Shown here: positions 1 to 59,689 of the stretch, piece by piece
Position numbering within the stretch: the first letter of the stretch is position 1
How the letters are laid out: every line of letters begins with the position of its first letter
Assembly (NCBI GenBank): GCA_038496445.1
Contig: JALMLS010000507.1
Location: 62,001 to 126,000, forward strand
DNA: 64,000 nt
Reading direction: 5' to 3'
Source: Trichosphaerium sp. ATCC 40318
Lineage: Eukaryota; Protista; Tubulinea
Position numbers and translations under genes: made by a program
Notes under the pieces: model-generated
Seen by the model: only the letters and a program-made list of their open reading frames with translations
What the model was told of the DNA's origin: nothing
Databases searched by the model: none

Positions 1-795
1 ATACGAAAAAATTTGTATTCAAATCCTGTTAGAGTAATTATCAAGCATTGGAAACATGGTAATAGACATGGAGATTCCAAACAGTACTACGATAATGGCC
101 ATTTACAGATACACTGTACTTATGTTGATGGTAAGCTTGAAGGAGAGTTCAATACATGGTATAGCAATGGCACAAAGCAATATAGATACCACTTTGTTAA
201 TGGGGTAAGGGAAGGACAGTACAAGTCTTGGAGAAGGACATGTGAACTTATAGAGCAGTGTTACTATGTTGAAGGGGAAAAAGAAGGAGAAGCAAAGAAG
301 TGGTATAAGAACGGTAAACTTCAACAGCAGAGTTATTTCGTCAAAGGTAAAGTCCAAGGAGAAAGTATGTCTTGGTATAAAACTGGTCAAATAAGCGAGC
401 ATAGTAACATTGTTAATGGCGAAGGAAACTATACGGAGTGGCACTCGAATGGTAAATTAAAGGAAGAATCTTTTTTTAAAAATGGTGAACGTGAGGGACA
501 GTCCAAGCAGTGGTTCAACAATGGGCAACTAAAAGAGGATTGTTGTTATGTCAATGGTAAACGAGAAGGATGTTGCGCGCTATGGCGCTACAATGGTACA
601 AAGTACTCACAAAGGTATTTTGTAAATGGAAAACGAGAAGGAGAATTCAAGTCTTGGCATGATAATGGTCAATTACATGAATTGGGTACTTTCGCTAATG
701 ATGAACTAAAAGGAGAATTCTTATCCTGGGACGAAAACGGTTCGTTGAAAAGTACACAACATTTCGGCGGGATGAAAGAATGTAGCATCTTGTGA
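1..795 (+). CDS. MORN2/YwqK-type repeat protein, 5'-partial, intronless, C-terminal CaaX (CSIL)
   Basis: Frame is open from base 1. Repeats of the form YxNGxxEGxxxxWYxNGxL recur throughout. Ends ...MKECSIL-TGA with no intron in 795 nt. Confidence 0.9.
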   Translation: MRKNLYSNPVRVIIKHWKHGNRHGDSKQYYDNGHLQIHCTYVDGKLEGEFNTWYSNGTKQYRYHFVNGVREGQYKSWRRTCELIEQCYYVEGEKEGEAKKWYKNGKLQQQSYFVKGKVQGESMSWYKTGQISEHSNIVNGEGNYTEWHSNGKLKEESFFKNGEREGQSKQWFNNGQLKEDCCYVNGKREGCCALWRYNGTKYSQRYFVNGKREGEFKSWHDNGQLHELGTFANDELKGEFLSWDENGSLKSTQHFGGMKECSIL

Positions 796-12520: not shown

Positions 12521-12784
12521 GCATACAAGAAAAACACAAAACAAAAGCACAGATCAAAACAAAACACATTGTATTATAGCATAATAACCACTTATACCAA
12601 ACAATAAAAAAACTTGGAACAAACGAGTAAATTCCGTGAATCTATGGCAAATCGCGAACCAAATAGATATTGTTACAAAAAAACTACACACCACTAAGCA
12701 TTCTTTTCTGCTAGCTGGCAGAACGTAGGGGTTAGATTTCAACCGTCAAAGTGAAGAAAGCCTCAAAGATTTTTAAATTACTTT

Positions 12785-14439
12785 TTATTCTTTGCCAATG
12801 TTGCCTTGTATAAAAGGACGCAAAGCAGCTAATGTTATTGGTATAGCTTCCTACAAAAAGAGTTAACAAGTAAGAAATTTGAAAAAGTGTAAGTAAATGC
12901 TTTTGTACCTCTGTGCGAATTGTTCTTGAGCCTTGACAAGGACATGTATTCAAGTAATAATCAACAATATCAACAACTGTACGGTTTGCTTCTGAAAGTT
13001 GTTTATCTCCTGCTAGACAACTCTCTAATCCTTTTAATCCACCAAATACAATAAGAATATGCCTATAAACACGTGTAAGACGGTGCTGAGCAAGTTCTTG
13101 AGGCGGACATAGACCAGAAATAAAAACAAGAAAAGCCTTTAAAGCAAAATTATAATTTACGTACTGAAACTTTGGAAGGTCTTCCATGTCATCTACAGAA
13201 CTACCGCGGTCTGAAGTACCAATGATGCAATCATAACGTTCCTTAAATGTGTTAGAAGATGTACAACGTATTAATTAAATTGCATTAATGTGTTACCTTA
13301 AAACTAGATGCACCAAGTGCTTCACGTAGACTAGATGCCCTCCTTGCTTCAGAGTTAGCAAACAGTGGACCATTTCATTAATTAGCTTCCTTACCGAACT
13401 TGAAATCCCCAATATATACCCATTGATTCTCTTGGTTCACTCGCATCTGTAGCTTTACCCTAGAATTCATGTTAAATACAGAAAAGTTGCAATTTGAGAA
13501 AAAAAAGAATTTGGCTGTCGTACTCTGAACTTATTCTTATCCATTTGATACTCTTTACCGTCATCTGTTATACCCATCTTAATTGTAACCCTCACATTTT
13601 CTCGTAAGCATTTATTTATGACACATGGCTAAAAACAACAATCAATCAATGACACCTCTTTTTTTTTTTTTTTTTGTATTTAATTGTTATGTAACACTCC
13701 TGACGGTTAGGTAGATGTGACGTACTTGTCGTAGGCCAATATTTACTGTAGATCGTTTTCCAACTTCAGTTAATACGACACCTTCTCTATATGGAACAAC
13801 AATATTCTACAAAGAGTGTCAAAAGACTCGCATGTCAAACTTGTTTTGATTCTACAAGTTGCTGATAAAATGTGTCTCATACCTCGCGCATATGGTGAGG
13901 CATATCTAGAGGAGGCAAATAGCCCGAAAATTGAAGCAATGGATCATGAGAAAACAATTTTCGCCTTAGGTACCTATATTGATGTTATACTACGCTAATA
14001 CGCTTATTTTACGCACTGTGGTGTTTCTGCGTATGTCAGCAGCTTGACAATTGCTTCAATAGAATCAAGTTCGCTGGCATTTTTACGTTTCTTTGTGTTA
14101 GCTTGTTCTTCATCTATTAAAGTAATATTTAAAACCGAGTATGACCCAAGAATTTCTCACCTGTTTGTTCTACCTCTTCAAATACTACAATCTCGTCTAC
14201 GTTAAATACAGACGCTGTACGCGCAATTCTACCGATTAGCGCAGCTTTTAGCTGTTCAGTCTGCGCATTTTGTACAATACTGGCTGGAAACTAATAAATT
14301 AGACACTAGGGTAAAATGACAGGCGTACAGCAATTGATAACGTCCAATTTCTTCCAGTTTTACCGTACTTAGCCTCTTGGAGGCGTCTACGTTTCCTATC
14401 GCTTTGGGAATCATTGCCGTGTGGGTGAGGACGCTTCAT
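12785..14439 (-). CDS. SPOUT1: SPOUT1/C9orf114-type RNA methyltransferase
   Basis: WTLSIA..ASIVQNAQ..LIGRIARTASVFNVDEIVVF, LTYAETP, YDCIIGTSDRG, HILIVFGGLKGLE, YLNTCPCQGSRTIRTEEAIPITL. Confidence 0.92.
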
Positions 14440-14612: not shown

Positions 14613-16261
14613 ATGGCCAAAACGTTTATTGTATGGGTTATTGATGGCGAAGAGCGTGATGGCGGTTATCTGTGCAAGGAGCACTCTGAGGTTACATTCG
14701 CAGACGTAAAACGCCTATACAATGGCCCTATGTGCAATTTTTTGTTTAAAACCCCTGGTAAACAGTATTTATCAAAATTATTGGTGTATTTACTAACGGT
14801 AATGTTGTAGATTACTCGCCAGAGGGCAAGCAATTACCTACATACCACTGGACATTGATCGACTACGAACTATCACCTGTAAGACGCTACGGCAGCCAAT
14901 GTTTACTTATATCTCGTTGCTTTAGGTGCCATTAACAAAACCAAACGGTCAGGATACTATTTACATTTGTCCTCAAATTCTCGAGTCTCGTGCGTTATCT
15001 ATCATTTAAACCGCCAAAATGACTATCCCTAGCTGTAACAAACGTTCGGTATCATGTAGACGTACGTTTGTCTGCCAAAATGTTTTTTTTTCGCGCATTT
15101 TCTAAATTGGCGTTTGTAGGGCATTAATACTCCAATCGTTCTTACCATAAAGAAACCTACGCGCTTGGTACTTGTTAATGATGTAAAGAGTCGTTTACCA
15201 GGCTTTGGTGGTGTGTTTTTGTTTAAAACGCCAGGTATGACGTAGTTACTTATTGCGCTAAACAAAGAGGATTGTTATGATCGATTAACTGACGTGTTAA
15301 CGGAAATTATTAGAACAAGCCTTAAGCCCAACAGATCAAGACCCACATCACTGGGCCATGCTTCTAAATCACTCTGGCGTGAGACCATCAGGTCAGCATA
15401 TCAATGAAATAGAGTGTAGGATTAAAACAAATATGAAACGTGCGCATGTCACTTTTTCGTCAAAAAAAACAAACTACAACAACGCTTCGCTACCATTGCC
15501 TTTTTTTATGATTTTTGATCCTTGCAATGGGAAATATCATAAAACAAGTCCAATCTAACTACAGGGCGCCTGAATAGCGATTTTTAGTACAATTAAACAC
15601 TTTTTTGTTTATCCGAGTCTCGAACATCTTTTCGTTAAAAAAAGTATTCTACTTTTAACGCTTTTACTTTAGCAATGACTATAGTATCAATACAAGTATG
15701 GGGAAGCAATGCTACTCCTGGTTATGTACGCATAAACAGGCCACCTTCAGAGATCTGTCTTGCGGATGTATTACCTTATTTCAGATCTATACATGGCGTT
15801 TATTTGTTAAAGGTACAAAAGAGATCAACAGCAGGCTGACAAGCTCTGAAAAAAATCAAAAACGGAAAGTTTCAAAAAATAGACTGAAACTGTTTTGTTT
15901 CCACTTCTGGTCGTTTTTTGGGTTTTGACACCTCTGTTAGGTTTATGAAGAAGGCGGATATCATTATTTTCTAATACGTCGTAACAATGAGGCGTTCCCT
16001 GTAGCTGATGCAAGTCAAGTAATCGAAGTTATAGTAGTACCTCCAAAATCTTTTGAATCTGCTGCAGCATCATTACCTATAAGTCATTTATCATCTGCTA
16101 CGCCTATGGCATCACTGGTTACGCCTTTAAATAATAACACAATCAACAATATGGCACCTCCTTCTATGGCTTCTCTGGCCTCTCTTCCAATGGCTTCTAT
16201 TGCACCTTTGGCTCCTATGGCTACTATAGCTCCTGTGACATCGATGATGGACACTACCTAA
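14613..16261 (+). CDS. Protein with three tandem DIX-like (beta-grasp) domains and an Ala/Pro/Met-rich tail
   Basis: Spliced units: TFIVWVIDG..VTFADVK..FLFKT, TNVRYHVDGINTPIVLTIKKP..VLVNDVK..FLFKT, TIVSIQVWG..TPGYVRINRPPSEICLADV..YLLK. All match the DIX pattern TxVxYxxDxxxTPYxxxxxxxxxxxTLxDxK...FxFK. Confidence 0.6.
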
Positions 16262-16760
16262 ACTAGATATTTCTCATTCTTGTAGAAAAGAAAAAATAAT
16301 TTACGCGTAGCTCGTATTAGTAAAAGACCGAGAAAAAAAAATATGAACTACCCATTTTTCCAACGTTGAAATTCCTTAATTCAATGGCTTTTTAAGAGAA
16401 AGGAGGAATTGACATAAACTCTGCGTTTTTTTCTCAAAAAACTTGTAGAGTTCCTCCGGCTACTTATTCCGATTGTGGCTTGTAAACTTTCACCTGAACA
16501 CCCGTACTACGCATCTGATGGCCTTATTCGGCCAAGGTTATTGCTTTAATTTACTTATTGTATGGAACTGTAAAGTATTTAGTTGCATACAACCAGCGGA
16601 ATCAAGCACTGTTGTTTTTGGGTTTTGTGTAGCAAAAATAGCCGTACAAGCAAAAAAGGACATAATTTTATCTTGTCGTCAAAATAAATTCAAAATTATT
16701 TGGGCAGAAACAATAGGAACCTTACGTGATAACTACTTAAAACATCCTTAAAAAAACACA

Positions 16761-19008
16761 ATGGTATTGTATCAGTGCAGTCTACTATGTGGCTGTAAAA
16801 AAGCAATGAACAAAAGCCAAAAGCAAGTCAGAAAGGGGTTGCGTAGCGGTATTTTCCGCGCTACTGTTGGTACGTATACACGAACTACAACGTGCGCACG
16901 TCGGTCTTTTTCTCCGTAGGCGGCGTTTCTTTTTCAAACCTGATGCGTAAAACACCTTCAAATGGTTTTACTGCACGTACCCTATTTCTTCGGATGTTTT
17001 TGCGCACAATCGTTTCGGTATACTTAAATTTCCATTCCGAGTACCTTTAATGATAAGAGACATAAAAGTTTAACCAATGAAGGAAATAACAACGTTTTTT
17101 ACTCAAATTGGACGGAAATGATTTTTTTGAGTTTCAATTACACCACGTGGTAATTACTTTCTATAATTACTTACGCTAGTTTATATTAGGTATTCTAAGC
17201 GCTATATCATTCTTTTACTTTTTTACAAAGGTATCAATTGAGATACACCTAGTCAGAGAGCTAGAACAACGAGATAATATTATACAGACATGTATTGAGC
17301 TTACTCTACAAACTGCAAGGGAAAGAGGTAACTCCGCAATTTGGGTGGCTGGCAAAGGAACCAACCTGGTGGCGAAAGAGAATATGGGTACAGTCTTTCA
17401 GACGACATTATTTGCTTGTTGACGTTAGCCTTGGCTATACAAAAAAATTTGTGATTCATCTACGCGTTTACTTTATCCGTATTAACACGCTCTAATAGAA
17501 GCAGCAAGAGCCCAGGTAGATATATTCAGGGCAGAAGTTGAAAAACTTTACAGTAATCCCATAGCGCGATACGACGACCTAGAAAAAGCTCTTTCTGCTC
17601 TAGATGAGTTACCTGACTTCCGTCTTCGGGTACGCAAGCATCTAAAATCAGCATTCCGATTTAATTGATTCTCGTCAGGTTGATGATGTAGCGAACACTG
17701 GTATTCTCGGCAATGAGACACTGGCGTTTTATACTGATATAAATGCTTTATTTGTTGACTTTGAACTATTTGAAAGTTTTTCGAAATTTGAAGATACTAG
17801 CCGTGGCTTGTACACCATTATTCGTGAATCTCTTGTACGTATTATGAAACTTGTAGACGTTTGTTGAATTTTAAAAACTAACGGTTTTTGTTACAGTTGA
17901 ACGAGTTTACTGGTATTGAGCGTGGTACCTTTGCAGCACTGTTTGAGAGAGGTATATTTTTTTCTTCTTTTTCTTCTTTTTTTTTTTTTTTTTTGTTGTA
18001 TTGAGTTTTAATCGTTTGTTTAGGTTACTACACTAGCCAGGATGAATTTCTGGATATTATTAATATCTTAAGTCAAAAATCCGAAACTGAAAAAGAGCTG
18101 GATGTTCTACTTAGGGATGAGCACCTACAAGTCTCCACGGATGTCAAGGTACTACTTTTTTTATTTCCTTTTGTTGTGTTTTCTTTTTGTTGTACTTATT
18201 TCTGTTTGTTTATAGAATTCTGCAAGTGTAAGAGAAGCAATAAGAATAACTGATGAGATGAGGAATACTGCTATCAATGTCAACTTTTTCGAAACGGCAG
18301 TAAGATAAATTTTTGGTTTATCTAACATTTATTTGTATAGGATTTCTTGGCCTTTAACAGAGCAAATCCTTTCACTATTGATCCTGATGAGTGGTTTGGT
18401 AATATGACTACTATCATCGATAGTAAGAGAACTCTTAGAGCAGTGTTATTGTACGTACAAGTCTTCGTGAAGCGTTTTTACTAACAAGGAAACATAGTGA
18501 TGACCACAAGAAGGTTCAAAGAAAACACTTGACGCAAACGATAATCGATGCTTGTATTGCTTTTATTGCATTGTGTTTAGAAGTTACAGCATGCAGTACA
18601 TTGATATATTTGGCGTGGCCAGTACTCAAGCTATTTTGGCGTTTGGAGCGCGATTCTAAACGGTACATAAAAGAACAACTTAAAACTGAGAGTGGCTTGG
18701 ATTGCTAACTTTTTTTAATTTGTCTAGATTTGAAACTTCCAGACGTACAGATACGGCTGGTACATCGACTAAAGAGGATGACGATGATGTCGAAGATCAC
18801 AACGATATGGTTTTAGCTATGTCTGAAGAACGTATGTAGCAAAAAAGATAGAACCAACGTTTTTTGTGTGGTTTGAACATTTTTTTTTAACATTTGTTTT
18901 CCCGTAGAAGTTGGATCAGTTACTACTGAATCATCGTCAATGCTGCCAGAGGAAGAAGATTATTCTGTTACCGACTCAGTAACTCAAGAGTCAACGACAG
19001 GTGCATAG
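16761..19008 (+). CDS. Two-TM membrane protein with extracytoplasmic NIT (nitrate/nitrite-sensing) domain and acidic cytosolic tail
   Basis: Hand-spliced; essentially missed by the ORF track. TM1 FILGILSAISFFYFF; LQTARERGNSA; LPDFRLRVD; LAFYTDINALF; EFTGIERGTFAA; DPDEWFGNMTTIID; TM2 ACIAFIALCLEVTACSTLIYLAW. Confidence 0.78.
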
Positions 19009-20049
19009 GCTTGTTTTGTTGGTTATTTTCCGAAGAAAGAACGGCCCTAAATTGGTGTGCGGCGCGGATATTCTCTTCTACTTGGTAATGAGCCATGTAT
19101 TTTTATTAAATAATATTACAATAAGCATTCTGTTTTTAACAAGAACACAATACCTTTAGTCGTATTTTCTACCAATTGTTTTTTTCCAAAAAGAGATGAC
19201 TTGTCTACTATGCAAGCAAGCACCTTCCTTTTTGTTCAATAGAATTGTTAGTTATAGTTGTGTGTTTAGTGGTCTAAATTAGGACGCTAAAACCTAAAAT
19301 ACAAACATTATTACGAGATTATATTGTCATAAAAGTGTGAACACTTTTTGAAAGTACTTACGTATCCCAAGCAATATTGCTTGATGCTTATTAGAACCCA
19401 TACTGTTGACATATGCAATTGGGACCTATTGTTTTCGTAGCACAAGGTTAATTGTAGTTTTCAGTTATCCAGACAATCCCACTTTTAGTCACGCAGCTAT
19501 CGCATCGATATGCAGCTGGACAAAACATAGAATTTGGTGTGCCTCCGAAAACAATAAAGGAATTGTGAGAGTTGCTCACAGGGTTTTTGAGGTCTATGAT
19601 CACGTCTACATGTGTATTGAAGGTATTTAATATTTGGTGCTCTGGGCCAATTGTTGTCATTCCTAGGAATATTGGTTGGAAAAATAAACACTTGGGTTTA
19701 GCAAGATGGATAATTCTTGCGTCTGTGACTCCTGGGTACGCAATTGAGTGGCGCCATAAACGTGCTTTAATCTTTGTTCTTTTTATGTTCATTACCAAGT
19801 TGCAAACACCAGAAAGAAAACCAAGATGAATGTCAAACTTTAGTAAAAGTTGGCATGGTATACATTTTGTACTGAAAAGGAAATGAACATTGGATCGAAG
19901 TACAACGCCAAAAAAGGATAAACCTAAATTGAATTCCCACCTTTGTATGTGGGACGTTTAACCTACAACTTCTGTTGGCGAACTCAAGCCACGAATTCGT
20001 CCTTTAAGAACTACTAAGATTACTTAATTAAGTAAATCAAAAAAAAACG

Positions 20050-21368
20050 ATGACAGCATCTCTATTCGCTGTTGCGTTACTAATACTACTTACTATCGCC
20101 CATACCTTTCCATGTAATAACATTAAAGGACCAAAAGGGGAAGTCTACAGCTTGGCTCCTTTGCAATCAAAGGTTCAATCCTTTTTAGGTAGAATGGTGT
20201 CACGATTAGGAGACTGATAAGACCTCATTCACATTGAAGATCATTCACATAACGGATTACTCACATTCATGAGTTCATTCTCAACCTTCATGAATAGTTC
20301 ATGAATCATTCATGACCAAAAGGGAAAATTTACAGCTTGGCTCCTTTGCAATCAAAGGTTCAATCCTTTTTAGGTAGAATGGAATGTCCAACTTGCAAGG
20401 TAACGATTTAGACTTTTAATTATCTGAAAAACGCATAAGCTCCCACCTAAGCTTCTAAAAAGGAAGGTTTCTACGAGTACACAATGGATATATGCAATTC
20501 CACATATTCTTGCGGAAATTTCGAGCTATGTGGTGCATGCCAAATGAACAGAAATAATTCAATGCCACATTTCGTAAGTAATCATATGTGTTTTTTTGCT
20601 TTAATGTGCTTGTTCTCGCTTACATGTTGTAGAGATGTTATGGTGTCATGGACGAAGTTAGAGGCTTAGATAAAGAAACTGGTGTATTTTTACACTACAG
20701 GTCTCCTGATGGCGTACATTCGATGTCGTGTACGTTTCGTTGAATTGCAACTTTTTCTTTGGTGTGATTTTTCAACATACTTTTTCTTAACGTTGGCGTC
20801 AAGGGCTTATACGTCTCTCTGCTTAAACTTAAATTTCCAAATCTTAGTCTGACCTTTTTTGTATTAGTATCAATCTATTGTGACGAGTTTGGATCAGGTA
20901 CATGTTTCAAAGAACTGAAGAAAAAAATTAACTCGAGAAAATGTTGACGCTGTATTTGACAATCTTTCGTTTAGAGTGGAGCGATGTGGTAGTTTATGAC
21001 CAAGAATTATACTTGAACTATATTCCTGTTACTGCCAAGTAAAGTATGCATGCCCTATAAACAAAAAATGTACGAAAGGAAACAACACTTCTTGTAATTT
21101 TGAGATTTTAAAGAAGAATCTAAATTTCTCTTTAGACAAGGAATATGCTATCACTGAGGATGTTAAAGTTCTAGGTAAACTAGTTGGAGAAGGTCCTGCA
21201 AGATCAGTAGAAGAAGCAAGCAGGAGAGCGTCTGATAATGGAGCAGTAGCCTTCAATTATTATGATTACAGGAAACAAGCAGAGTACTTTAGGTTTGTTG
21301 ATGGACTTGAACGCCTCAGTACCAAATCGGAAACTTCAAGCGGTATTGTTTACAAGACTGGATTTTAA
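20050..21368 (+). CDS. Secreted protein with MRH/M6P-receptor-like domain and a possible PAN/apple-like C-terminal domain; exon 1 interrupted by an insertion
   Basis: Signal peptide MTASLFAVALLILLTIAHT, then C..GPKGEVYSLAPL, FYEYTMDIC..C..CGACQ, CYG, GVFLHY, SIYCD, VKYACP. Confidence 0.6.
20129..20382 (+). repeat. 69-bp direct duplication (20129-20197 and 20314-20382) flanking a 116-bp insert
   Basis: The copies are identical except 3 substitutions near their 5' ends. The insert (20198-20313) starts TGTCACGA and is rich in TCATTCA/TTCATGA. Confidence 0.95.
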
Positions 21369-21762
21369 TAAAGCAAGTTGATGAAACAGTCCTATTGTGT
21401 AGTGTCAGTAGTATCTATTGAGTATGGCAATACCTTACTACTAGATGAAGATTGACTTTAGAAATGTTGGTTTAATATAGGCCTATGAGTGCTTAGCGTA
21501 AATCACATCGGGCGTCAAGAAAGGCCACAGGAAAAACATCATAGGTATAAACTTTTACCTTCACTATGCGACAGCCTTAGCTTCACTGTCATGTTATTTT
21601 TGAAGTATTGGTAACAGAGTAAGTAGACATGGAAACATTCAGACTAGAGGAGGACTCAATTTTTAGTTCAAAGGAGGAAAAATAATTTATTTATTCGTTT
21701 TCTGCATATTTACATCTTGTCAGAAGTATTCAGTTTTAAATGTGAACGTGTAAGTTCGATTT

Positions 21763-24700
21763 TTACTCAAGTAGGCCACTTCTGCGACGATTAAGCTTTA
21801 GAGTGCTCTTGCTGTTTGTTCTTACAAGTCTTACTCGACGTTTTTTCCTTTTCTTCTTTGGAGTCTAAATGAAACACTCAGTACACGAAAAGTAAATCTT
21901 CTACACTTCCAACATAAAGGTACTAAATACTACTACAGTACACTTGTAGTAACAGTATTCTTTCACATGTGCTCAGGCAATGGAAAATGAAAAAGTGAAA
22001 GAAAAAGAGTTATCCAAGAAATATTTTAAACGTACTGCTTTCTTTGGTGTTGGTGGATCATCTACTTCCATTTCATCCTCTTTTTCACCTTCCTCTTCAT
22101 TTTCTTCAAGTTCAGCAAGCTCTGTCAAATGGTATTGTTCGTATTCAACTGTATTCTTAACAATAAATCGAACAACAGTGATAGATTGCTTTTGTCCCAT
22201 TCTAAATTCAAGTGTTTGTTTTTTTTCATTTAACAAAACTCTTAGATGTACCTGTATGCGCGACCAATTGCTTGTTGCTCAACGGCCTTGGCTTCTGCTC
22301 TAGTACCTTGAACTGGATCCACCAGAACAATATATTTAGCGCTCATCAAGTTTGTTCCAGATGCAGATTTTGCAAGGCTAAAGCAATGTAAGCTACCACA
22401 AAAGGATTCTCAAAGTGACCACATATAAAGTCGTAATTGGCGTGTACCTCAGAAGAATAACTTTAACTGCGCTATCATTACTCTTGAAGGCTTTGATAGC
22501 TCTTTCACGTCTCATAATGTTTCTGGGACCAATTTAATAAAACCAAACAAGAAAAAGGAAAAAAATAAGAACGCACCCTTCTACCATCACTGCTGGTATG
22601 TCAACATTGTAAAGTAAATCCTGAAGTTGGTAAAGCATCTCTGAGAACTGAGAGAATAAAATAACTCTAGCTTGAGGTTCTTTAACCCATAAATCAAGCA
22701 AAAAAGTGATAATAGCAGCAAGCTTTGTTCCATAAACCAAAATACGTTCATCTCGATTCAAGTTGACATAAGCTGAAGAGCTTCCGCTCATACCATCTTC
22801 CATATCAGCTTGTCTGTATATACGATCAAGTAACAGCTCTTTTTTCCCCTTTGTCGATAAGTTACGACTCTTTAAATAGGCAGTCAACTGCTTTTTGTTC
22901 CAATCTTCAACATTCTGTATAGCTGCTGATCCACGTGTTATAAGTTTTTCTTTTTGCCATGACATATCAACTGGTTTCTATGGTAGACCATAAGTAAGTT
23001 GTACAAGACTCCTAATTGAGAAATAAAGCCACAAAGCAAAAAAATTCAAAAAAAAAAACGTGATCAGGTTCACCCACATTAAGCTCGTTAGATGTAGAGC
23101 TTTGTATCTAGTACGGATTCTCGCCGATAAAATGAAGCAAATTTGAAGAAACATTAGGCGAAAGCGTACAATATCTTTCCAGAATTCCCATTTTTTCTCT
23201 TGATGTTTCAGCTCACGTGTAACTTTTTCTATTTCTCTTGGGTATCTATCAGCACGTCCTGTAATGGCTGTTATCTCTCTTTTCAACCCTTGTGACTTTG
23301 CAATAATCTCACGATACTTCTCATGGTCAGATATATCCCAAGACATCTGAGAACAAGTAAGAAAAAGTAAAGTAACTTAACAATGCTTTCTGACTTAAAA
23401 AAGTTGAAAAAAAAACGTTGTAATCAAACAAGTTTCGTGGTTAATTTAAATTTAAACATCACTTTACCTTTCTACGCTCAGCATCCACCTCTAGAAGCTC
23501 AGCTTTAGCTAAAGGCTTCCTTTTCGCGTCTACAACAAGTTGTGACTCCATATCCTTTATATTACGCCTCATACTCGTAATAGAGTTCTAGAAGTGTAGC
23601 TAAGAGTAAGACAAAAGTTCTACTAATCAAACTGGTAATCACAACAACGTACAGAAAGAGCTGGTTTGTGATATTGTCTTTTTACATCCAGAGTAGAAGC
23701 TCCACGTCCTTCTGTATCAACAGAGATACAACACAACTTTCCAAGGTTTCCGCTATAGTGTGGATGAGGTAGATACCTTATTGATGTTTGTTCAACATCA
23801 ACAACAGCACTTTTATAAATAGCATCCTCAATTGGATGAAACTTTAGATATTTCACTTCCTAAACTCGGAAAGTAAGTTCTCAATACAAAATGTTGTTCT
23901 TCTTCTCTTTCTATTGGTTACCTGTTTATATTCTGGAATTTCTATCTCATCCTTTGCACTCTCTTTAGTATGTCTCCAATAGAGATTATTAATGAGTAAA
24001 TCAGATACAACCCAACTACAGAACATTAGTTAAGCCACAACAAACAAAAAAACCAACCAAAATTAAACCGTTCTCTTGAAGCGAACTACAACGTTTACCC
24101 AGCGATTACATCCATTTGGTAATGGATAGATATAACTCAAAAACCACTGATACGATCTGATCGTAATTGGGAGGAGGTTTAAGAAAGTGTTGATTTACTG
24201 GCAAATTCTTGAAATATAAAAAAAGTGAACTTACTTGTGGTAATCATCAAAAGAGTCATCCATCGTCCAATCTTCTTGTTTATGATATCTTCGTCTCTTG
24301 TATTTTGTTGTAGGAGGTTCTATACCACAGTATCCCCTTGGTAGAGTTTAATGCATGTGCTTTAAGAACGAATTAAATCATACCATGGTAAGCTCTTTCC
24401 AGAATAGTCAGGAAGTGCTGGAGCTTTTTCATGCGACGTATCCATCCATAGATACTGTATTATACCATCTATAACCTGTAATGAAGGGAATGGTGTCCCT
24501 AAAGCAGAATATATTAGATTGAAAGGCAAAACAAAGAGTCAAGTACCTGTTACATACCACCTATATTTAGCATAGGTGATGTCAAAAAAGATTTTCATAT
24601 CATCTTGTACAACCATCTCGTGACCCTACAGGTAGGATATATTAGAGATAGGACATCTATAGATATTTATGTACCTCATCACATATAATTCTGTGCCAGT

Positions 24701-26504
24701 AAATGTTTTCTAGAGTCGGAGAAGTGTGTTGAAGCCAACCATTTTTTTTTAGTTCAAGTAGATTCTAGAAGCGTTTAGGACTTTGTGGTTTCATTACTCT
24801 TACCGTCCGTTTGGTTGTAGCAAAATTTCCCCGTCGCCTAGCTTGATCTAAACTAGGCCTCGAGGACCCTCCAATAAAAGACTTCAGGTAGTTGCCATTT
24901 TGCAAAAAGTTATACGAAACAACAACAACATCTACGACGAAAAGATTAAATAAAGTTAACTTCAATATTGGATATTGTGGATATCCTCACCTGCGTCTAT
25001 CAAATCCTTATATGTTAGGGCACGATGTTCTTTGATAACAGTACATTTGATGACCTAAACAGAGCGTAAATGACTGATTGAAATACAAAGAATATCAAAC
25101 CTTCAAGTCAGTTTTGCTTCGTTGCTGAAGTTCATCCACCCACTGTTGACATAAGTGATTTGGACAACAAACTAAGGCTGTGTTAGGCTAATGTGCTTGT
25201 TGAACCATAAAGGAGTTACCTAAAGTAGCTTTGCTTTGGAATAAAGCAACGAAGTCTGTCTCAGTTTCCTTCCAAGTTACCCCAGCTGAAACATCTTCAG
25301 TTGATGGATTTGTAACAATTAAGCCTAAAACCTCCATCGTCTTCCCTAGGCCCATCTCATCCCCAAGAATACCTCCTTTGTATGTCAAACTATATGAATA
25401 ATCGTCTCCAGCAGCCTCTACTTCCTCCTCTGTGAGGAACTTGCTTTCACCAAGAGAAAACGATAAAGAAGGTACACGCCATTGACTCAGTAAAGAATAG
25501 TCAAACTCAGTTCTTTGATCTACGTCATCCTCTACAGATTTCATCCATGCTACAGCGTCCATTTGATACTTATATAGAGTAATATTTAACTCCTTCGGAG
25601 ATACCATCTTTGGCAATTCACGCTAAGCCAGGTGAGCTAACGAATAAAGTATACTAAAAAAAAAGCCTGAGGCTTCGTACACGTGGTAAAAATGCGTCCT
25701 TGTTTGCCAACATCTTTACTCTCTCTGCAGCACATTTCTTGTATATATCACCGGCTACTCCCCAATGTAGTAATGGTTTCTAAAAAGAACAAATCAACAA
25801 CCTTCAAAAGACACAAACAGAAATAAAACCAAGTCAAAAACAAAGAGTAAAGTACCAGCTCAATGGAGACTGAATCGTCATCACGGCTCTTGTAAATGAG
25901 CCTCTCTAGTTCGCTCATATGAATAATAATATCCCAGCGCCATTCATCGTCCGTTACTTTAGTAATATCGAATTTCCAAAGATCTCCAGGGAAGACTTTT
26001 TGTGAAAAAAAGTTTGTTGGCATCTTTGTCAATAGCCTTGAAATGTAATTATTCATAGTTAGAGACATTGATCCGTCAGGAGAATCAACTTTTACTCTCG
26101 ACTAACTCTTATGGTTAGCAAAAGGAGCTTAAACATGTAATATACGCCGTACATAGTATTCATAAGCCTTCGTGGGATGTTTAATCAACCTACTGCCGTA
26201 TTTCATTTGCTCACCGTGTACACTAACCCATTGGAATAAACTATCCCTAGAAACGGCAAGCCATTGGCGCTAACGCGTAATAATCAGATTTTACACTTGT
26301 AGTTAAAACGGTTTCGGCGAAAAACGATCGTACGCTAACTAGACCGGCCAAAGGTACTTCAGGACGCTCAAGCTCAAGGAATATCATAAGTAGCACTTCG
26401 TAAGGTACAAATGGGCATTCTTCCACTTGTCGGGAGTTATTGATCGCCTCATTTAGCTCTGGTTGGAGCTGACGCTTTTTGGTAGGCTCTGTTGCCGCCT
26501 CCAT
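21763..26504 (-). CDS. Rad5/16-SHPRH-like SNF2 ATPase with N-terminal F-box and an inter-lobe SAP domain
   Basis: F-box VPYEVLLMIFLEL. Motifs GGILGDEMGLGKT, LVVCPNHLCQQW, WHRIICDEGHE, RWYVTGTP, YGTKL, VILFSQF, SASGTNL, EQQAIGRAYRMGQ. SAP-like WNKKQLTAYLKSRNLSTKGKKELLLDRI. Confidence 0.9.
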
Positions 26505-56421: not shown

Positions 56422-57501
56422 ATGGAACAACAACAAACACAGTTCAACCAAGTATTCGACCTTGTTGCGCTACCAATTGAGTTAATAGTCCATATTCTCA
56501 AACAAGGGACGTATACGCTTCGTATAGCCCAAACATGCCATCTTTTACGAGATATTGTTCACAACCACGTTGGGTATGGTCGTATCCGTACTAAAAACAC
56601 AAATAAAGTTCAGATGCTTTCTGGTAGTCCATTACTCCACAATACGACTATTGATCTCAGCCAATGTAAGCTACCAAACGACATTATTGCGGCATTGGCA
56701 GGCGTGCACACTATCAACCTATCTAGTTGTAAATCAATAACAGACAATGGCATTGCAGCATTGGCAGGTGTACATGAGATTAATTTATCATATACAAATG
56801 TAACAGATGAAGGTTTGAAGGCATTGGCAGGTGTGCACACTATCAACCTATATAGTTGTAAGTCAATAACAGACAATGGCATTGCAGCATTGGCAGGTGT
56901 ACATGATATTAATTTATCATTTACAAATGTAACAGATGAAGGTTTGAAGGCATTGGCAGGTGTGCACACTATCAACCTATATAGTTGTAATTCAATAACA
57001 GACAATGGCATTGCGGCATTGGCAGGTGTACACACTATCAACCTATATAGATGTAATTCAATAACAGACAATGGCATTGCGGCATTGGCAGGTGTACATG
57101 AGATTAATTTATCATATACAAATGTAACAGATGAAGGTTTGAAGGCGTTGGCAGGTGTACACACTATCAACTTATGTTATTGTAAGTCAATAACAGACAA
57201 TGGCATTGCGGCATTGGCAGGTGTACATGAGATTAATTTATCATATGCAAATGTAACAGATGAAGGTTTGAAGGCATTGGCAGGTGTGCACACTATCAAC
57301 CTATTTAGTTGTAATTCAATAACAGACAATGGCATTGCGGCATTGGCAGGTGTACATGAGATTCATTTATCATATACAAATGTAACAGATGAAGGTTTGA
57401 AGGCATTGGCAGGTGTGCACACTATCAACCTATCTAGTTGTAAATCAATAACAGACAATGGCATTGCAGCATTGGCAGGTGCACACACTATCTATCAATG
57501 A
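56422..57501 (+). CDS. Intronless F-box plus LRR protein with near-identical repeats
   Basis: LVALPIELIVHIL..IAQTCHLL, followed by alternating 25-aa and 24-aa LAGVHxINL repeats. Confidence 0.92.
   Translation: MEQQQTQFNQVFDLVALPIELIVHILKQGTYTLRIAQTCHLLRDIVHNHVGYGRIRTKNTNKVQMLSGSPLLHNTTIDLSQCKLPNDIIAALAGVHTINLSSCKSITDNGIAALAGVHEINLSYTNVTDEGLKALAGVHTINLYSCKSITDNGIAALAGVHDINLSFTNVTDEGLKALAGVHTINLYSCNSITDNGIAALAGVHTINLYRCNSITDNGIAALAGVHEINLSYTNVTDEGLKALAGVHTINLCYCKSITDNGIAALAGVHEINLSYANVTDEGLKALAGVHTINLFSCNSITDNGIAALAGVHEIHLSYTNVTDEGLKALAGVHTINLSSCKSITDNGIAALAGAHTIYQ
56690..57495 (+). repeat. Coding tandem repeat of alternating 75-bp and 72-bp units (147-bp higher-order unit)
   Basis: GCATTGGCAGGTGT(A/G)CA recurs at 72- or 75-nt spacing; one extra 75-bp unit breaks the alternation. 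Confidence 0.95.
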
Positions 57502-58531: not shown

Positions 58532-59506
58532 TCACTCGTGCACATTATTTAGGTCATTAATAGCTTCCTCTATAATATGAGCGCAATAATTTAGTGTTAA
58601 TATCTTGACGCCAGAGAGTGGTGCAATCCACTCATCTGTTGCCTTTGTGAAAGAAAGATCTGAGTGTGCATCTTTAAGATATTTCAAGTACTCTCCAATG
58701 ATATTGAGACAACTCCTTAGACAAATATTATGTACTCCAGCAAGATATTCAAAGCATGATCCTGTGATTCCAGGACATTCAGCAAGATTAATTGTGTGAA
58801 CACCAGCCAATGGTATCACACCTGAATCTGTTATAGCTGTTTTGCTTAAATGTATCTCATGAACACCAGCCAATGCTGAAACACCTGTGTCTGTAATGAG
58901 AGCACATGCGTGTAGAAATATTGTGTTTACTCCAGACAAGAAAGATAGCACGTCATCTGTCACACTTGAATGTATAATACTGATACGTGGTACACCAGAA
59001 AGTGCTTTCAAACTCAGAGTTGTCACTCCGGGAACTTCAAACAAAAAAATGGATTTGAGGTGTTTCACAAGAGGTGTTATGTCTGTGATACCTGTACATC
59101 GTTCTATGATCAAACGATGAACACCACAAACAGATTTAAGCCCTTCATCAGTTATAAAGTCATTATCACAAAGCTTCAGTTCAGAAACACCAGAAAATAA
59201 TGCAAGCTCTTTGTTTGTTAATGCCGGAAAATGTCGGAATGATACTAATGAATTTTTAAGAAGAGGACTTCCACACAGTTGGTAACAATGTGAAGATGAC
59301 CGAACTAAGATAAAATTGTATCCTACATGATAGTGTATTATGTCTGATACAAATTTGCAGGTTTGAGAAGCATTACATCTATCAGAATCATCCAAAAACC
59401 CAAGCAAATGAGCAATTATCTCTGTTGGTAACTCTAATAGCTCAATGGTACCAGGTACCGTCGTATTGTCCTTAAATGAAGCTGCAATGTTTGATAATAG
59501 GTCCAT
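58532..59506 (-). CDS. Intronless F-box plus LRR protein (diverged paralog of 56422-57501)
   Basis: LLELPTEIIAHLLGFL..ASQTCK, the shared linker HVGY...GSPLL.N, and LAGVHxIxL repeats. Confidence 0.88.
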   Translation of the reverse strand: MDLLSNIAASFKDNTTVPGTIELLELPTEIIAHLLGFLDDSDRCNASQTCKFVSDIIHYHVGYNFILVRSSSHCYQLCGSPLLKNSLVSFRHFPALTNKELALFSGVSELKLCDNDFITDEGLKSVCGVHRLIIERCTGITDITPLVKHLKSIFLFEVPGVTTLSLKALSGVPRISIIHSSVTDDVLSFLSGVNTIFLHACALITDTGVSALAGVHEIHLSKTAITDSGVIPLAGVHTINLAECPGITGSCFEYLAGVHNICLRSCLNIIGEYLKYLKDAHSDLSFTKATDEWIAPLSGVKILTLNYCAHIIEEAINDLNNVHE

Positions 59507-59689
59507 TGGTGGTATAGTTGTTAATTTACTGCGAAACAAGCTTGTGGACTTTTCTGGGTCACTTAAGAGATATACTTCCGCAAGTTAACCATACTCTCAT
59601 TCGTCAACCTCCGACAACCACGTTTTAGTTGGCTTTCCACTTTTGTATCATAACCATTTTCCTTTTTCTGAAATGTGTTAATAGCAGCT

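Follow-up and report, generated by a model that had tools for sequence, protein, structure and literature searches.

NIT domains were long regarded as bacterial, and a gene at positions 16761 to 19008 (+ strand) of the stretch analyzed here raises the question of what such a domain does in a eukaryotic membrane protein to which no enzyme is attached. The stretch, hereafter the window, comprises 64,000 nucleotides (nt) of Trichosphaerium sp. ATCC 40318 (contig JALMLS010000507.1, positions 62,001 to 126,000 of the forward strand). An earlier note, made from the letters alone, had described a NIT domain with two intact ERG motifs between two transmembrane (TM) helices, followed only by an acidic Ser/Thr-rich tail of about 70 residues, and had proposed a stand-alone nitrate/nitrite sensor or co-receptor that signals through partners or through tail phosphorylation. 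We found that the ectodomain belongs to the NIT family, both by hidden Markov model (HMM) and by fold, and that the protein ends after a disordered acidic Ser/Thr tail, with the output domain absent. With a probability of roughly 55%, we read the protein as a two-pass membrane NIT sensor with a small-anion ligand, whose signal is read by a separate partner.

The spliced gene encodes a product of 445 amino acids (aa), which is letter for letter the same as the stored MMETSP protein P0005. When P0005 was searched against Pfam, the NIT model (PF08376 / IPR013587) matched at 77.0 bits (E = 3.9e-21, cut-off 24.9) over residues 74-324, covering profile positions 2-236 of 239. Three paralogous proteins likewise scored above the cut-off (P0002, 75.0; P0007, 75.1; and P0004, 59.6 bits). 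Searches with single exons gave only a weak NIT match, in exon 3 (E = 0.075); it was the full-length protein that made the domain clear. An AlphaFold2 model had a predicted local distance difference test score of about 90 over the NIT part (aa 60-330) and below 50 for aa 376-445. The modeled ectodomain is all-helical and built as a pair of four-helix bundles, as in NasR of Klebsiella oxytoca (4AKK), a NIT-ANTAR nitrate/nitrite-responsive antiterminator. Using Foldseek against PDB, chains A and B of NasR 4AKK were the only matches with E < 0.001 (E = 6e-7, probability 1.0), and VIA-align superposed 269 residues on NasR (model 41-336 on chain 9-287) with Z 29.4 and a root-mean-square deviation of 3.3 A, the next matches being single four-helix-bundle chemoreceptor domains at Z of about 12. 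The offset of this alignment was nearly constant at 31-32 residues and placed R207 on NasR E175/R176, an equivalence that was inferred from the aligned ranges and not from model coordinates. These helix-5 residues have been proposed to line the nitrate pocket of NasR (PMC7496416). The Glu-Arg dyads of the two motifs, E81-R82 and E206-R207, fall on the counterparts of NasR helices 1 and 5, putatively where the two bundles meet, and both dyads were invariant in the alignment of all four paralogues.

Structural neighbors in the ESM Atlas included TM-NIT-TM histidine kinases from actinobacteria (TM-score 0.72), a cluster of NIT-guanylate cyclases from molluscs (0.59-0.64), and bacterial TM-NIT-TM-HAMP proteins. 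Sequence searches of PDB with exon 2, with the 414-aa protein P0001, and with the whole-protein profile A1 matched no NIT structure. Two other matches were set aside. A similarity to haemoglobin alpha over aa 106-155 (17507-17705; DDLekALSALdeLpdfrLRVD) was judged a chance match in a helical region, its phmmer E reaching 1e-5 only with tandem-fused haemoglobin constructs, and a lipoyltransferase match in the PDB sequence searches was discarded as coincidence.

Two hydrophobic spans flank the NIT domain. The first, at about aa 30-50, straddles the joint of exons 1 and 2, and the second (TM2, about aa 338-366, nt 18541-18627), in exon 9, reaches a 19-residue hydropathy of 2.15, the maximum among the exons. 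The N-terminus carries seven Lys+Arg and no Asp or Glu, and its cysteines C6, C10, and C12 adjoin the membrane; seven further Lys+Arg follow within 19 residues after TM2, and N-x-S/T sequons, such as NET at aa 158, fall mostly within the NIT part. Given the basic N-terminus devoid of acidic residues, the basic segment behind TM2, and the sequons lying mostly in the ectodomain, both termini would be cytoplasmic, with the NIT domain outside the cell or in a lumen. The chain ends with a tail of 67 residues (aa 379-445) that contains 19 Asp+Glu, 21 Ser+Thr, and 3 Lys+Arg; its net charge is -16, and S/T-x-x-D/E sites number only three.

Pfam detected no further domain in the whole of P0005, be it HAMP, kinase, cyclase, MCP, or ANTAR, and NCBIfam returned none. 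Residues 330-445, searched separately, gave no Pfam match above a curated cut-off, the best row being HemY_N with E = 0.076. Hence this polypeptide carries no catalytic or signaling domain C-terminal to TM2, such as defines a NIT-coupled receptor enzyme, and it is instead a eukaryotic TM-NIT-TM protein without an output domain, encoded by a nuclear gene. The layout, both ERG motifs, the NIT assignment, the acidic tail, the eukaryotic nature of the gene, and the sensor standing alone without an attached enzyme domain were therefore all borne out, as was the end of the gene before any downstream catalytic domain, for which the available transcripts are decisive (see below).

The gene model comprises 11 exons with GT..AG borders throughout, and its frame closes from ATG 16761 to TAG 19006-19008 on the + strand. 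Exon 1 (coding part, 16761..16869) encodes the basic, Cys-rich N-terminus (aa 1-29, MVLYQCSLLCGCKK...), which is putatively cytoplasmic, and the first part of TM1. Exon 2 (17190..17387) holds the remainder of TM1, the first NIT helix, and ARERGNSA (17315-17338), whereas GIERGTFA (17912-17935) is encoded by exon 5 (17897..17951); three-frame translation placed both motifs in frame on the + strand, starting at 17315 and 17912. Further parts of the NIT domain are encoded by exon 3 (17499..17629, with contig joints at 17386/17498 and 17628/17678), by exon 4 (17679..17834), which contains the sequon NET, and by exons 6 (18024..18148) and 7 (18216..18299), both seen in the model and in contig joints. 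The domain ends in exon 8 (18341..18450), where a conserved WF-x-NM-T/S occupies aa 304-309. Intron 8 ends at the second AG, so that exon 9 (18498..18662), which encodes TM2 and the juxtamembrane KLFWRLERDSKR, begins at 18498, and the joint 18450/18498 was present in all four transcript runs. The first half of the tail is in exon 10 (18728..18831), and its end is in exon 11 (18908..19008), which also includes the stop codon; the joint 18831/18908 again occurred in four of four runs. Between 16692 and 16761 there is no ATG, and an in-frame TAA (16749-16751) precedes the start codon. The ten spliceosomal introns identify this as a eukaryotic nuclear gene. Furthermore, the window has a guanine-plus-cytosine (GC) content of about 36-37%, and the introns of the gene are short and its exons small; in GC content, intron size, and intron density this fits the published Trichosphaerium genome, with 37.7% GC and introns that average 75 bp in length and number 8.7 per gene (PMC10521059). 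Most of intron 5 is taken up by a long T-rich run (17953-18008), which was treated as a repeat in contig mapping and at which reads were apparently cut.

Transcript evidence was taken from contigs of four public runs of three studies, mapped over 16200-22100. All ten introns were seen as GT..AG joints in spliced contigs. The mRNA extends over 16692..19124 (+): a contig of run X5 (1534 nt) starts at 16692, right after a loose end resembling a complementary-DNA adapter, and ends at 19116, and a contig of run X1 ends at 19124. The transcripts thus terminate at about 19120, some 110 nt past the stop codon, and an ATTAAA at 19105..19110 (+), just 5' of these ends, is a possible polyadenylation signal. 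In none of the four runs did a contig fall within 19352-21518 or join a downstream exon to the gene. Coding differences between contigs of other runs and the window were synonymous in six of six cases. Two stored proteins represent intron-retaining forms of the gene: P0001 (414 aa) retains the last intron (18832-18907), stops at TAG 18837-18839, and ends in ...SEERM, and P0006 is a fragment that retains intron 7 (18300-18340). Since the public 414-aa model derives from an intron-retaining form, it is not the main spliced product, which is the 445-aa protein. Together, these data demonstrate the structure, expression, and complete ends of the gene, and the locus is best explained as an expressed nuclear gene, present in a single copy, in a marine amoeba that is most likely Trichosphaerium sp.

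Contigs of run X2 (organism B, 2024) covered 16714-19317 and differed from the window by about 1-3%, indicating that a second strain or close species has the gene. Some of these contigs were unspliced, at intron 1 and at the 3' flank, and all coding differences of the run were synonymous. Upstream, a separate transcript, represented in X1, X4, and X5 by contigs about 1.1 kb long, ends at 16328/16329, and an untranscribed spacer of about 360 nt (16330-16691) lies between this end and the 5' end of the NIT gene.

Relatives in the collections searched formed four clusters only, namely P0001/P0005, P0002, P0003/P0007, and P0004. When exon 2 was searched against 1.84 billion representative proteins, two were returned, P0001 (100% over the exon) and P0002 (429 aa, 48%), and a cluster look-up placed P0005 with P0001. 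P0002 bears the label MMETSP0405 and taxid 498012, the latter denoting the marine amoebozoan Trichosphaerium sp. ATCC 40318. P0003 and P0004 are encoded on two transcript contigs of one Joint Genome Institute (JGI) sample, and on each the tail is followed immediately by a terminal poly(A). An intron is retained in the P0004 contig (L001), at about 170-230; its codon position equals that of intron 1 here, and the contig encodes the same N-terminus upstream of it. All four paralogues have the same TM-NIT-TM-tail layout. Within the 64-kb window, tblastn with the exons found no paralogue. Word searches with the single protein, with the whole-protein profile A1, and with the NIT-only profile A2 (E up to 10) returned only members of the family itself; they never returned P0002, although it is in the collection and in the query alignment, so that a blank in them counts for little with this organism. 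With the family profile, no relative turned up among viral contigs, the species genomes of 185,579 bacteria and archaea, and JGI metagenome contigs; the blank viral scan left a giant-virus origin without support. The family is therefore isolated at the sequence level, and only HMM and fold tie it to other NIT domains.

Conservation among the paralogues was distributed very unevenly along the protein. Identity to the paralogues was 62-72% in the cytoplasmic N-terminus and 67-76% in TM1, fell to 25-37% in the NIT ectodomain, rose again to 45-65% in TM2 and 50-58% in the juxtamembrane KLFW segment, and was lowest of all regions in the tail (13-26%), which keeps its composition only. The N-terminal peptide is conserved as MVLYQCxLxCGC, and the invariant residues in and adjoining TM2 are E351, V352, A354, C355, L358, Y360, L361, P364, and K367-L-F-W370. 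In pairwise comparisons of exon 1, 27-32 of 36 residues were identical, 15-19 of them with different codons, and in TM2 the codons differ for at least half of the identical residues. Because synonymous sites are heavily diverged in the conserved parts, the conservation of the N-terminus and TM2 reflects purifying selection at the protein level, and recent gene conversion is not its source.

Based on these features, the sensor could work as follows. The short, basic, Cys-rich N-terminus would lie in the cytoplasm, its three cysteines being candidates for palmitoylation, and TM1 would serve as a signal anchor. The 285-residue NIT domain, with its two four-helix bundles, would face the outside or a vesicle lumen, and TM2 would lead the chain back to the cytoplasm, into a short helix (KLFW...) and then the disordered acidic Ser/Thr tail. 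A small anion would bind between the bundles at the E81-R82 and E206-R207 dyads. In this paralogue, with its two full ERG motifs, nitrate or nitrite would probably be that anion; NIT domains of chemoreceptors have been measured to bind both (PMC12358799). As bacterial TM-NIT-TM sensors do, the protein would respond to anion binding with a shift of its TM2 helix, and a partner protein, rather than an enzyme of the receptor's own, would read the signal via the conserved N-terminal peptide and the transmembrane pair with its buried Glu351. We suggest this last step, in which the TM2 movement passes to a separate partner through the N-terminal/transmembrane module, tentatively and at somewhat less than even odds. 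The N-terminal peptide, TM1, and TM2 are a likelier link to a partner than the tail, because they are conserved and the tail is the least conserved part. For the same reason, and because it has only three S/T-x-x-D/E sites, the tail-phosphorylation signaling proposed in the earlier note is weakened; at most, the tail would play a modulatory part, possibly in phosphorylated form. That the receptor senses bacterial prey or redox zones is speculation.

Several points weigh against the reading of the protein as an anion sensor coupled to a partner. The AlphaFold2 model was built from an alignment of four sequences only, and the conservation analysis used the same number, probably all from one organism. 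Six Lys+Arg also occur within the 20 residues just before TM2, so the charge argument for the topology is not clean. In the three paralogues one ERG motif is altered (to ERV, ERA, or ERE); together with ectodomains that are only 25-37% identical, this suggests that the family may sense several ligands. From bacteria there are NIT domains with affinity for neither nitrate nor nitrite (PMC13343842), and in NasR the contacts of the arginines with the ligand were proposed and not seen in a ligand complex (PMC7496416). Finally, no partner was identified, and gene neighborhood, in a eukaryote, offers no pointer to one.

The same observations could be accommodated in other ways. A membrane-anchored NIT-fold protein might not signal at all and might instead serve in structure, in sorting, or in the regulation of transporters at an endomembrane, for instance that of a phagosome or contractile vacuole, with the dyads serving fold stability and the tail a trafficking signal. 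No sequence feature demonstrates signaling, acidic Ser/Thr clusters do occur in sorting signals, and some NIT domains have no known ligand (PMC13343842); nevertheless, every characterized NIT protein is a sensor module (PMC7400543, PMC7496416, PMC12358799), and the supposed bearer of the trafficking signal, the tail, is the region with the lowest conservation, which makes this account unlikely. It is quite unlikely that the protein descends from a longer NIT receptor whose output domain was lost and is now a regulatory or decoy subunit that heterodimerizes with full-length NIT kinases or cyclases and tunes them. That its nearest structural neighbors are the N-terminal sensor modules of TM-NIT-TM histidine kinases and animal NIT-guanylate cyclases would fit such an origin, and the strong conservation of the transmembrane helices would fit packing on another receptor chain, but no NIT protein with an output domain turned up for this organism in the exon-2 search of 1.84 billion representatives or in the word searches, both kinds of search being insensitive and length-limited.

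An output made by the membrane module itself has also to be weighed. Intramembrane charge-pair assembly is the logic of immunoreceptors and DAP12, and E351, P364, and KLFW, together with a palmitoylatable N-terminal peptide, might form the output of a new kind of receptor, either a NIT-gated oligomeric P2X/ASIC-like channel or a ligand-binding subunit joined to a signaling chain via such a charge pair. We regard this as a long shot; if true, it would show a bacterial sensor domain rewired into eukaryotic signaling without enzyme fusion. The specific version in which the NIT domain gates an oligomeric channel, TM2 lines the pore, and Glu351 sits in the permeation path is very improbable. A pore would account for a sensor that works without an enzyme domain, and two TM helices, a large ectodomain, and both termini inside are the topology of P2X and ASIC/ENaC; moreover, TM2 and the N-terminal cytoplasmic peptide are among the best conserved parts, and TM2 has an invariant acidic residue, small or polar residues (T, C, S), and a Pro. 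However, only topology and conservation speak for this reading. Neither in sequence nor in fold was a resemblance to any channel found, with an ion-transport-domain row of the Atlas at a TM-score of just 0.23, PDB matches to membrane proteins were generic helical ones, and bacterial TM-NIT-TM sensors signal as dimers, not pores. A truncated or mis-modeled gene, a pseudogene, or bacterial contamination deserves next to no weight. Intron-retaining transcript forms do exist (P0001 and P0006), and bacterial contamination had to be removed from the published assembly (PMC10521059), but the gene has ten GT..AG spliceosomal introns and complete spliced transcripts in three studies, its coding differences between strains are synonymous only, the same ends are found in four of four paralogues, and no relative was found in the 185,579 species genomes of bacteria and archaea. 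The spliced transcripts, the ends of the paralogue contigs, and the synonymous-only differences refute this reading.

Compared with known systems, the putative anion sensor shares with NasR the fold and the Glu-Arg dyads on corresponding helices. NasR, however, is soluble and cytoplasmic and has an ANTAR RNA-binding output, whereas the amoeba protein is embedded in the membrane, with its NIT domain between two TM helices and without an output; the two are 17% identical, with no sequence-level match. Actinobacterial CvnA-type TM-NIT-TM-HAMP-HATPase kinases, the best structural neighbors in the ESM Atlas, and bacterial NIT chemoreceptors have the same sensor-module membrane topology as the amoeba protein, but these bacterial sensors carry HAMP plus kinase or MCP outputs, whereas the amoeba protein lacks HAMP and has no bacterial relative detectable by sequence. 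NIT-only clusters in the ESM Atlas, two bacterial (354 and 278 aa) and one arthropod (386 aa, 64 members), are similar in length and content, with feature scores of 0.92-0.93; these are automatic clusters known from their summaries alone.

Eukaryotic precedents have been published. NIT-guanylate cyclases occur in animals, including Placozoa, molluscs, annelids, hemichordates, and others (Moroz et al. 2020, PMC7400543). They share the TM-NIT-TM sensor module with two conserved arginines, but a guanylate cyclase catalytic domain follows TM2, where the amoeba protein has about 80 residues of disordered tail and then a stop. In the alga Pelagomonas calceolata, NIT-protein kinases are accompanied by one TM-NIT-TM protein without a kinase, which was proposed to be an external nitrate/nitrite sensor, is overexpressed in low-nitrate waters, and has homologues reported from pelagophytes, dictyochophytes, and a single putative cryptophyte only (Guerin et al. 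2022, PMC9481584). Compared by description, this protein is like the amoeba protein in being eukaryotic, in having its NIT domain between two TM segments, and in lacking a kinase. Pelagomonas, in contrast, is a stramenopile and not an amoebozoan, and the amoeba family has its own N-terminal MVLYQCxLxCGC peptide. The animal cyclases and the Pelagomonas protein show that the architecture is not new for eukaryotes, and the novelty implied by the earlier note was overstated. What is new is a small, intron-rich, highly diverged NIT family in an amoebozoan, whose conserved part is the N-terminal and transmembrane module. The gene adds Amoebozoa as a third eukaryotic supergroup with NIT domains, and the family has long been resident in the genome. 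As every copy lacks an enzyme domain and yet has the conserved N-terminal/transmembrane module, the family offers a clean case for how a bare sensor signals in a eukaryotic cell, and it is a candidate for the perception of nitrate, nitrite, or related anions by a bacterivorous marine amoeba.

Elsewhere in the window, pieces of long open reading frames had other Pfam matches: MORN repeats at 13-795 (+), an RNA methyltransferase at 12732-13187 (-), a SAP domain at 22534-22965 (-), a SNF2 helicase domain at 25188-25616 (-), an LRR_6 array at 56422-57501 (+), and an F-box plus LRR protein at 58532-59539 (-).

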